A program made the position numbers and the translations under genes. Of a stretch of 64,000 bases of DNA, positions 6,032-8,542 are shown one piece after another. The stretch's first letter is position 1. Every line of letters starts with the position of its first letter. The notes under the pieces were generated by a model. That model had not been told where the DNA came from, did not search any database, and saw only the letters and a list, made by a program, of their open reading frames with translations. The stretch is from Schizochytrium sp. TIO01 (Eukaryota; Protista; Bigyra: Labyrinthulomycetes), in contig SMSO01000031.1 of the NCBI GenBank assembly GCA_004764695.1, positions 3,944,436 to 4,008,435 of the forward strand. Direction: 5' to 3'.

Positions 6032-7306
6032 ATGTGCAAGCAGACCAAAGACACAAAATCAAAGCAGCGTGCAGTATCAGTAAGCACCAGCATGATGTTC
6101 TCCGGACTGATGGGTAGTGGTGACGATTCATCAAAGGAGTGCAAGAAACATGTTTCTGCAGTAGTAGATGAAGACATAACAACCGAGGCTTCTGCATTGC
6201 CACCAGTCGTGGAGACGAAGCCGAAGATGGCCAAAACGGCCGCAGGCGAGAAGTCTGATGAGGAGCACCCTTTTTTCCACTACTATGGGCAACTGGCACA
6301 TCAACAAAACATGTTGCAAGACCATACGCGCACAGGAACTTATCAGCGCGCTATTTACGAAAACCCCAGCGACTTTGAAGATAAGGTTGTCTTAGACGTG
6401 GGAACAGGTTCTGGTATTCTTGCAATCTTCGCAGCACGTGCTGGAGCTCGCAAAGTCTATGCAGTTGAAGCAAGCGATATGGCAGAGTCTGCCAAGCGTT
6501 TGGTGCAGGCCAATAACTTAGAAGGTGTAGTAGAGGTCATCAAGGGAAAGCTGGAGGATGTTGACCTGCCAGAAAAGGTAGATGTGATTATCTCGGAGCC
6601 CATGGGGTTTTTACTTGTCCACGAGCGCATGCTGGAGAGTTACGTACTTGGGCGCACACGCTTCCTTCGCGATGGCGTCGAGCCTAAAATGTTCCCGTCA
6701 AGAGGCACAATGTACTTTCTGCCTTTTTCTGATTACGGACTCTACGCCGAGCAATATGCCAAGGCTCAGTTTTGGGCCACAACAGACTTTTATGGCGTCG
6801 ATTTATCATCCCTGGTTGATGAGGCTGTAAAACAGCATTTTTTGCAGCCGGTAGTTGGTGTCTTTGATCCCTCCATTTTAATTTCGGATCAAGAGCGTCC
6901 CGCAACTTCGACAATTGATTTTGAGACTTCAGAGGTGGAGGAGATGCTTGATATCACAATTCCATTTGAGTTCCTTATTCACACAACGACTCTTTTGCAT
7001 GGTATTGCAGGCTGGTTTGATGTTGACTTTATTGGGAGTCACAAGACTATTACCTTAAGTACAGGGCCCTTCACACCTTTTACGCATTGGCACCAATGCC
7101 GTATGCTCCTTCCCGAGCCCATTGCTGTAAACAAGGGGCAAACCGTTGAGGGGACAATTCGTATGGTTGCCAACGAGAAGTTTTCTTACACTATCCACCT
7201 CGATGTACGCCTTCAGGGAACCAGTGTGCAATCTTCCAACACAATTCTCTTACAAGAGCAGTATTACCACTACCTTCAAGGATCACCTACATACAATGGA
7301 GAGTAG
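6032..7306 (+). CDS. CARM1: Type I protein arginine methyltransferase, CARM1/PRMT4-like
   Basis: YYGQLAHQQNMLQD..RTGTYQRAI (CARM1-type), motif I VLDVGTGSGIL, VYAVEAS, double-E loop IISEPMG..ERMLESY, THW loop THWHQ. The start could also be ATG 6092. Confidence 0.9.
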   Translation: MCKQTKDTKSKQRAVSVSTSMMFSGLMGSGDDSSKECKKHVSAVVDEDITTEASALPPVVETKPKMAKTAAGEKSDEEHPFFHYYGQLAHQQNMLQDHTRTGTYQRAIYENPSDFEDKVVLDVGTGSGILAIFAARAGARKVYAVEASDMAESAKRLVQANNLEGVVEVIKGKLEDVDLPEKVDVIISEPMGFLLVHERMLESYVLGRTRFLRDGVEPKMFPSRGTMYFLPFSDYGLYAEQYAKAQFWATTDFYGVDLSSLVDEAVKQHFLQPVVGVFDPSILISDQERPATSTIDFETSEVEEMLDITIPFEFLIHTTTLLHGIAGWFDVDFIGSHKTITLSTGPFTPFTHWHQCRMLLPEPIAVNKGQTVEGTIRMVANEKFSYTIHLDVRLQGTSVQSSNTILLQEQYYHYLQGSPTYNGE

Positions 7307-7937
7307 ATATCACGCGAAGAAATTGAGCCTTGCATGGCTAAGAGCAGATCTGTTTTACACGACGCAAAGGGTAGCTCGATTTCTTCAGTAGGTACCTTCA
7401 ATTAGGTCCACCTAAAATTAAAAATAGATTATCAACAGAAATGCAGTAAGTCCTTCACATGAAGTTTGTAGCCTAGTGCAGCAGGAAAGAATTTACGCAT
7501 AACTTCGACCTATAGGTTGCATCGACTGTCTATGTATAGATCATTGTACCTCACGGTACTGTACAAGACATTATTTTGGAATTCGGTTTCCCTCATTCTT
7601 TTCTACTACCGCCTTTCGAAGCAAAGAGGTTTACATTAAAATAGAGGGTCTTCAGCATAAGTTTCTATAGTATACGCTAATGTTCGTACAGAAACAAAGA
7701 TTTTCATCTATTTTTTCTTTAAGTTACCATGGTGCCTTGGTAGTAAAGCAAAGAAAAGATATTGTGAGACCTTCAGATTTATCTTGGATTTATAAATTTA
7801 TGAAATTGTTAACTTTCTCTGTTCGACGCAATCAATGCAAAAGATCTTTGCATAGGAGCTATGGTAGCAATTTGTCTCGAGCAACGAAGTCGAGTTTAGT
7901 TCCTTGGAGGTTCTTCAAATGTTCCTTATAACTATTC

Positions 7938-7945
7938 TTTATATA
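7938..7945 (+). promoter_or_regulatory. TATA box (TTTATATA) of a type-3 Pol III-like promoter for the U6-like gene
   Basis: TTTATATA lies about 30 nt upstream of the predicted G start of the U6-like RNA, the spacing typical of U6 promoters. Confidence 0.6.
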
Positions 7946-7968
7946 GTAATCATTCTTTCAATTGTTCT

Positions 7969-8077
7969 GCCTCTGGATTTCCGGAGGCACCAATGATTGG
8001 TATAAACACAGAGAACATCAGCATGGCCCCTGAGGAAGGACGACCATTCTAGACCTGAAAGTTACCTGCTTTTTTTT
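7969..8077 (+). ncRNA. U6: Divergent U6-like spliceosomal snRNA
   Basis: 5' hairpin GCCTCTGG-ATTT-CCGGAGGC; conserved ATTGG; ACAGAGA box 8008-8014; AGC triad 8020-8022; ISL ATGGCCCCT-GAGGA-AGGACGAC (canonical ATGGCCCCT-GCGCA-AGGATGAC); T8 terminator 8070-8077. Length about 109 nt, similar to U6. The exact 5' end is uncertain (7964-7969). Confidence 0.8.
8070..8077 (+). terminator. Oligo-T Pol III terminator of the U6-like gene
   Basis: Run of 8 T at the expected U6 3' end. Confidence 0.65.
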
Positions 8078-8542
8078 CCTGGTCTAACCTCAAATAGGCC
8101 ATTTTAATACTTCACTCACTAAATAGACTTCTCTTCATTCTTTAAATAATAACAGTAGTTTGGGATGCTTAGTAAGGAGAAAAGGATGTACAGGACAAGG
8201 TGTTTATTCGCCCTAACTAGTCGATCTTATTACGCCAAATCTAAAATAATGAGTGACTTTCTGATGGCAAAAGTGATAAGTTCATCTTACAGCGTGAGCC
8301 TTAATTGCAAAATTGAGATAGGCTTCATGAGAAAGTGTTTGACCAGAAATCACTAGGTTAGCCTGCCTCTATCAGATGGCACTTTACTAACATTTTTTTC
8401 TGTTTCTCGTGTTTTATTTTTGTTTATTCATTGGCAGGTTAATTTTATTATTTAATTTATATATGATGTATATATGATGGGTCATATATATCTTAAATAC
8501 TACTAGTAGAATATAGGCATATGCACTTAATTTTTTTAAAGT

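Follow-up and report, generated by a model that had tools for sequence, protein, structure and literature searches.

A single, divergent U6 snRNA gene in a Schizochytrium genome has very probably drifted together with its U4 and U2 partners

Canonical U6 snRNA (RF00026), as represented by human RNU6 and yeast SNR6, combines a 5' stem-loop and a U-tail with the ACAGAGA box, the AGC triad and an internal stem-loop that carries a C.A pair and a single-base bulge. Its partners are U4, contacted through stems I and II, and U2, contacted through helices Ib, Ia and II; its gene has an upstream TATA element and a T-run terminator. The locus analysed here lies in a 64-kb window (G000:C30:3944436-4008435), the whole stretch of DNA under analysis, and has all of these elements in common with canonical U6. 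It differs in an ACAUC segment where AGAUU or UGAUC is otherwise found, a GAGGA loop instead of GCGCA, a C instead of U at the bulge, an altered helix II sequence and a new second hairpin at nt 21–33. The bulge invites comparison with domain V of group II introns, which carries an A-C dinucleotide at its bulge opposite the catalytic triad helix and is alike in this respect; here, however, the RNA is an snRNA that acts in trans, with U4 and U2 as its partners, and it does not belong to that family. U6atac (RF00619) also has the AGC triad and an internal stem-loop, but its box reads AAGGAGAGA, whereas this gene has ACAGAGA plus a 5' stem-loop and gives no match to RF00619, so that the view of the initial annotation that it is not U6atac is upheld.

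The two core positions of most interest have both been mutated in yeast. At the bulge, U80C and U80A had no obvious growth effect according to the review PMC5855946 (for U80C via McManus et al. 2007), while U80G was lethal unless compensated and U80 is base-paired within U4/U6 stem II (PMC5855946). At the helix Ia position, the yeast U2-C29/U6-G55 pair can be disrupted viably (PMC3923124), the G55 substitutions concerned being other than G55C. [quoted passage not shown] Compared with these laboratory mutants, the present gene carries changes at the same two positions that are fixed in nature and combined in one RNA, with a compensating G at U4 position 1 for the bulge C. A literature search on thraustochytrid snRNAs found nothing beyond gene counts.

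Bulge C was also found outside yeast genetics. A metagenome scan with C specified at the bulge, and the loop and helix Ia left free, recovered six U6 loci (L026-L031), all of them Rfam U6 matches of 51–85 bits (three at 84) that comprised at least three sequence types with otherwise canonical cores. These genes carry AAGGACGAC with the bulge C in common with our locus. They differ in that all retain AGAUUAGC, with G at the helix Ia position, and have GUACA/GUAUA, GCGCA or GCACA loops, none showing ACAUC or GAGGA. One of the contigs is GC-rich and its adjoining gene resembles chlorophyte proteins, a lead only. No U6 with a GAGGA loop was found in a separate metagenome scan for that loop, and in comparison with the metagenome scans the ACAUC segment together with the GAGGA loop was seen only at the window locus. 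Judging by the sequences of these loci, C at the bulge is a variant that recurs in nature. The suggestion that this base implies altered catalysis is thus not supported, given that yeast U80C is without growth defect (PMC5855946) and that six environmental U6 genes share the same C.

Identification of the gene was based on the Rfam U6 model, which in a whole-window scan aligned from position 1 to 105 of 105 with 7969–8074 on the forward strand at 54.3 bits (E=6.9e-11). The match is full-length and exceeds the gathering score of 44 bits, and is therefore far beyond chance; it was the only above-threshold Rfam match in the 64-kb window. With its T-run terminator the gene extends over 7969–8077 (+). 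A TATA-like element, TTTATATA, was read directly at 7938–7945 (+), which places it at -31 to -24 relative to the Rfam-aligned 5' end at 7969, the spacing found in vertebrate U6 Pol III promoters. The gene begins with a 5' stem-loop (7969–7988) of 8 bp, including one U.G pair, closed by an AUUU loop and folding at -13.9 kcal/mol. By sequence and Rfam alignment the ACAGAGA box (U6 nt 40–46; 8008–8014) is unaltered. It is followed by the helix Ia/stem I segment ACAUC (U6 47–51; 8015–8019), in which C48 at 8016 occupies the yeast G55 position, and by the AGC triad (U6 52–54; 8020–8022). U6 58–73 (8026–8041) spans both strands of the internal stem-loop together with the loop between them, and doubles as the U4/U6 stem II strand. 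Its CCCCU and AGGAC arms enclose the five-base GAGGA loop (8032–8036) and form the C.A pair, and the bulged pyrimidine is C, not U (C73 at 8041; yeast U80, human U74). Downstream lie the U2/U6 helix II strand CCUGAAAGU (U6 86–94; 8054–8062) and a T8 run at 8070–8077, which would act as the Pol III terminator and supply the U-tail, all on the forward strand. Every feature listed in the initial annotation (TATA, 8-bp hairpin, ACAGAGA, ACAUC, AGC, GAGGA, bulge C and T8) was found at its given place. The element at -31 and the T8 run are Pol III-type signals, and it is from these signals that the polymerase is predicted. A comparable TTTATAA precedes the U4 gene by about 30 nt; apart from the U6 and U4 TATA-like boxes, comparison of the 150 nt upstream of U6, U4 and U2 revealed no shared promoter element.

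The genomic surroundings were consistent with the source organism. Among named organisms, the closest homologue of a neighbouring arginine methyltransferase (PRMT) open reading frame at 6032–7306 is that of Hondaea fermentalgiana at 81% identity, oomycete sequences reaching about 55%, and this fits a thraustochytrid origin. The 3' end of the PRMT mRNA (7677–7787) lies some 200–300 nt upstream of the U6 TATA box. Elsewhere, upstream of the gene for cytosolic RPS2 (uS5), an 11-nt exact complement to U6 19–29 (ATCATTGGTGC) was observed at about L004 (-) 2809–2799, flanked by ATGATTA- and TGATTA-like motifs and followed by no CTGA D box. A U6-antisense snoRNA at the two uS5 loci (L004, L005) was considered and rejected, as there was only the 11-nt complement, no D box and nothing convincing beside any CTGA.

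The snRNA complement was surveyed across the 64 Mb genome (37 contigs). Genome-wide Rfam model searches gave one U6 (the window locus), one U2 (L002, 92.7 bits) and one U4 (L003, 54.3 bits; G000:C30:6032033-6032173), all three low-scoring against Rfam, and no U6atac model match. It is important to note that the genome model search scores the best candidates only, for which reason patterns were used as a second approach; absences based on models are weaker than those based on patterns, since the candidate-limited model search also missed U1 (RF00003) and U5 (RF00020). The U6 core pattern ACAGAGA-N5-AGCA-N3-CCCCTG, applied to the whole genome with up to two mismatches, had its sole exact match at the window locus. 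No second U6 emerged, as five checked two-mismatch matches lacked an Rfam match and the remainder resembled chance or a repeat. The U2 branch-site motif pattern matched the true U2 and one other place exactly (L032), the latter rejected as a second U2 and regarded as a chance occurrence within sequence that resembles a 3' UTR. The U4 5' stem-loop pattern matched the true U4 and three further places, which were rejected as U4 by Rfam or by eye. The U5 loop I motif GCCTTTTACTAAAG had no exact genome match, and 12 of the 13 one-mismatch matches were scanned, none with an Rfam match; U1 and U5 are either very divergent here or the search was too shallow. The survey also encountered a repeat sharing the 25-mer ACAGAGARTGTAACTACTGCCCCTG, unrelated to U6 and present at six or more sites, several of which lie close to a contig end (L010-L014 and L022, at G000:C5:1811596, C8:108029, C8:183452, C12:9994, C12:42024 and C34:47152).

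The initial annotation had raised the idea of a specialised U6/U4/U2 set operating beside a canonical one. Beyond the divergence itself nothing speaks for such a set. U6, U4 and U2 are each single-copy, U6atac is lacking, no U2 carries GAUG, and the check for a canonical U6 elsewhere with the Rfam model and the core pattern found none. Within the limits of the assembly and of the searches a second snRNA set is rejected on these grounds, and we consider it highly improbable.

Evidence that the divergence is shared with a partner came from U4. Duplex calculation paired U4 1–16 with U6 58–73 in a stem II of 15 bp with one C61/C13 mismatch at -27.6 kcal/mol, in comparison to a mean of -12.8 kcal/mol for shuffled U6, and none of 1000 shuffles was as good. 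Judged against the Rfam consensus of both RNAs, the strains compared being about 99% identical, three stem II pairs were changed on both sides: U6 A65 with U4 U9 and U6 G67 with U4 C7 (consensus C-G in each case), and U6 C73 with U4 G1 (consensus U-A). When the U6 loop was set back to consensus letters the duplex with its own U4 fell to -16.2 kcal/mol; the same change at bulge C73 gave -25.3 kcal/mol, and loop and bulge together gave -13.9, so that consensus reversions in U6 cost 2.3 to 13.7 kcal/mol of U4 pairing. As these reversions weaken the duplex, both the GAGGA loop and the bulge C fit this genome's U4. Stem I joins U6 49–55 to U4 56–62 in 7 bp (-9.5 kcal/mol; 86 of 2000 shuffles as good), with the AGC triad paired to U4 G57 C58 U59. 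One of its pairs, C51-G60, is U-A in the Rfam consensus and in vertebrates; the terminal position of the stem, C48/C63, is mismatched. A U4 complementary to the variant stem-loop had been anticipated in the initial annotation, and the U4 of this genome, which begins GUUCUUCCUCAGCGGC, comes close to it; the predicted UGCUGAUG is not there, and U4 has UGCUGAUC. The proposal of a lineage-wide rewired spliceosome accordingly holds in a mild form, in that the single U4 fits the variant stem-loop strand, and is not supported as a variant catalytic system.

Pairing with U2, whose numbering in this species equals that of yeast U2, was likewise retained in large part. Helix Ib is formed by U2 G21 C22 U23 with the AGC triad (3 bp), and helix Ia by U2 G26 A27 U28 with C51 U50 A49 (3 bp), followed by a U29/C48 mismatch after which an A47-U30 pair is possible; the predicted helix Ia is weakened but present. 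Helix II, whose region in U6 had been described as unrecognisable, is in fact present as a pairing with the genome's own U2: U6 86–94 pairs with U2 3–12 in 9 bp with one bulged A (-8.7 kcal/mol; 13 of 2000 local shuffles as good). The U2 itself (L002 (-) 1696–1501) shows a U run, GAUUUUUUUGUAGUA, at nt 24–34, where the linker from helix Ia to the branch-site GUAGUA has the consensus GAUCAAGUGUAGUA. Its helix I bulge is UC, with UA or AA otherwise found.

C48 is the exception to this matching. It opposes pyrimidines in both partners, C63 in U4 and U29 in U2. A G at this position would give a G-C pair with U4, taking stem I from -9.5 to -13.2 kcal/mol, and a G.U pair with U2, taking helix I from -3.1 to -6.7 kcal/mol. 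As G would pair with both, U4 and U2 look as if they still expect G48, and judging by these complementarities the U6 gene appears not fully attuned to its partners at this base. A U2 with GAUG had been expected to compensate the G-to-C change; U2 instead has GAUU, and C48 is unmatched in U2 and U4 alike. The uncompensated C48 can be interpreted as a mark of a pseudogene or decaying copy, with a working U6 elsewhere in the genome, and the low U6 score (54 bits, where three metagenome U6 genes reach 84) points in the same direction. Against this, neither model nor pattern detected another U6, the sole U4 is complementary to the variant U6 and not to a canonical one, promoter and terminator are intact, and an exact contig of high depth is present in an RNA-like run (see below). 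Decay of this copy is accordingly most improbable, and the initial description of an intact, functional-looking gene was borne out by its status as the sole U6 and by the U4 complementary to it.

The variant bases were also supported by sequence from other strains. A DNA contig from another study and under another organism label was identical over 7969–8074, with the nearest differences at 7960–7964 and 8166–8169, and contigs of four other runs (four studies, four organism labels) showed no difference in 7982–8074 and differed in the flanks; three RNA-like runs among these carry identical U6 letters. The reading that the variant bases are assembly or sequencing errors, which had been named as a ground for dismissing the gene, found no support and conflicts with this identity of other strains' contigs in the presence of differing flanks; its probability is negligible. 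At the flank rate, zero strain differences in 106 nt have P about 0.33, and since such an outcome is expected about one time in three, strain identity is no evidence of selection.

Presence of the gene in transcript data was examined in runs guessed to be RNA (here RNA-like), which consist of assembled contigs, so that true ends, strand and level are not readable from them. In three such runs there were gaps between transcripts, and contigs stopped at the methyltransferase mRNA 3' end at about 7677–7787. Run X19 contained an exact 93-nt contig (7982–8074) at a k-mer depth of 348 that ends five bases into the T-run, in comparison to depths of 125 for the neighbouring mRNA and 75 for the downstream sequence. 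A chimeric X19 contig of 695 nt at depth 1995 also places the 3' end at 8074. Expression of U6 is likely on the basis of these assembled contigs of runs guessed to be RNA.

In the X19 chimera, window positions 8045–8074, with five U, are joined directly to L060 (-) 1527–1498 (G000:C30:7084866-7084895; GTAGGTGACGGG), 3.1 Mb away. The genomic sequence before GTAGGTGACGGG is ATTATCGTAC, and the junction resembles the boundary between an exon and a 5' splice site, or else the start of a transcript, with a small open reading frame about 500 nt downstream of it. The contig can be read as a real U6-to-intron junction or as a product of template switching or ligation, the latter being most likely. Other RNA-like contigs run past the U6 terminator in the region 8045–8408, namely those of X19 (depth 75) to 8408, X16 to 8243 and X8 over 7826–8300, and reflect either read-through or an unannotated overlapping transcript.

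Our analysis therefore favours 7969–8074 as the genome's single functional major-spliceosome U6, which has very probably drifted with its U4 and U2 partners. The gene would probably be transcribed by Pol III from the TATA element at -31 and terminated in the T8 run, as predicted, like the exact RNA ends, from these signals. As with U6 in other organisms, the RNA would be bound to U4 on entry into the tri-snRNP, by stem I (U6 49–55) and stem II (U6 58–73). Once unwound, it would fold its internal stem-loop and form three helices with U2, namely helix Ib (AGC/GCU), helix Ia in shortened form, and helix II; its predicted activity in splicing would proceed through these steps. The odd bases would be lineage-specific substitutions, apparently thraustochytrid, most of which have probably changed in concert with the two partner RNAs: the GAGGA loop with U4 U9/C8/C7, C73 with U4 G1, C51 with U4 G60, and the helix II strand with the U2 5' end. 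The two core changes would be tolerated, as the bulge C keeps a bulged pyrimidine and its phosphate, and C48 would cost both helix Ia and stem I their terminal pair.

Alternatively, C48 and the group II-like A-C bulge may be functional in themselves, retuning how U4/U6 unwinds, how stable helix Ia is and how Prp2/Prp16-type proofreading operates in a single, kinetically rewired spliceosome. C48 weakens stem I and helix Ia both, U2 is also changed beside helix Ia (GAUUUUUUUGUAGUA in comparison to GAUCAAGUGUAGUA), U6, U4 and U2 all have low Rfam scores with U1 and U5 not found, and in yeast helix Ia disruptions and U80C suppress cold-sensitive prp2 (PMC3923124). The matching yeast mutations are, however, viable, U80C being without growth phenotype (PMC5855946), and the bulge C is present in otherwise canonical U6 genes of other eukaryotes, and we regard such retuning as quite unlikely. 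That the lineage operates its only spliceosome with a deliberately broken helix Ia/stem I end pair, a group II-like A-C bulge and a U-rich U2 linker, and with a shifted balance of U4/U6 unwinding and Prp2/Prp16-type proofreading, is an unlikely proposition as well; if true, nature would here provide a parallel to the yeast suppressor mutations.

In summary, a new splicing machinery is not indicated, and the divergent lineage has one U6, of the ordinary kind, encoded by this gene. What remains of interest is the natural, fixed combination of a C at the metal-binding bulge with a mismatched helix Ia/stem I end pair. The analysis defines the U6 gene and promoter of what is apparently a thraustochytrid in industrial use, and these lend themselves to expressing guide RNAs with Pol III. 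The locus also provides a clean natural case of three-way co-evolution of U6, U4 and U2, and indicates that two core positions usually drawn as invariant, the metal-ligand bulged U and the helix Ia-closing G, can vary naturally, in agreement with yeast genetics in that backbone and geometry outweigh base identity at the bulge.
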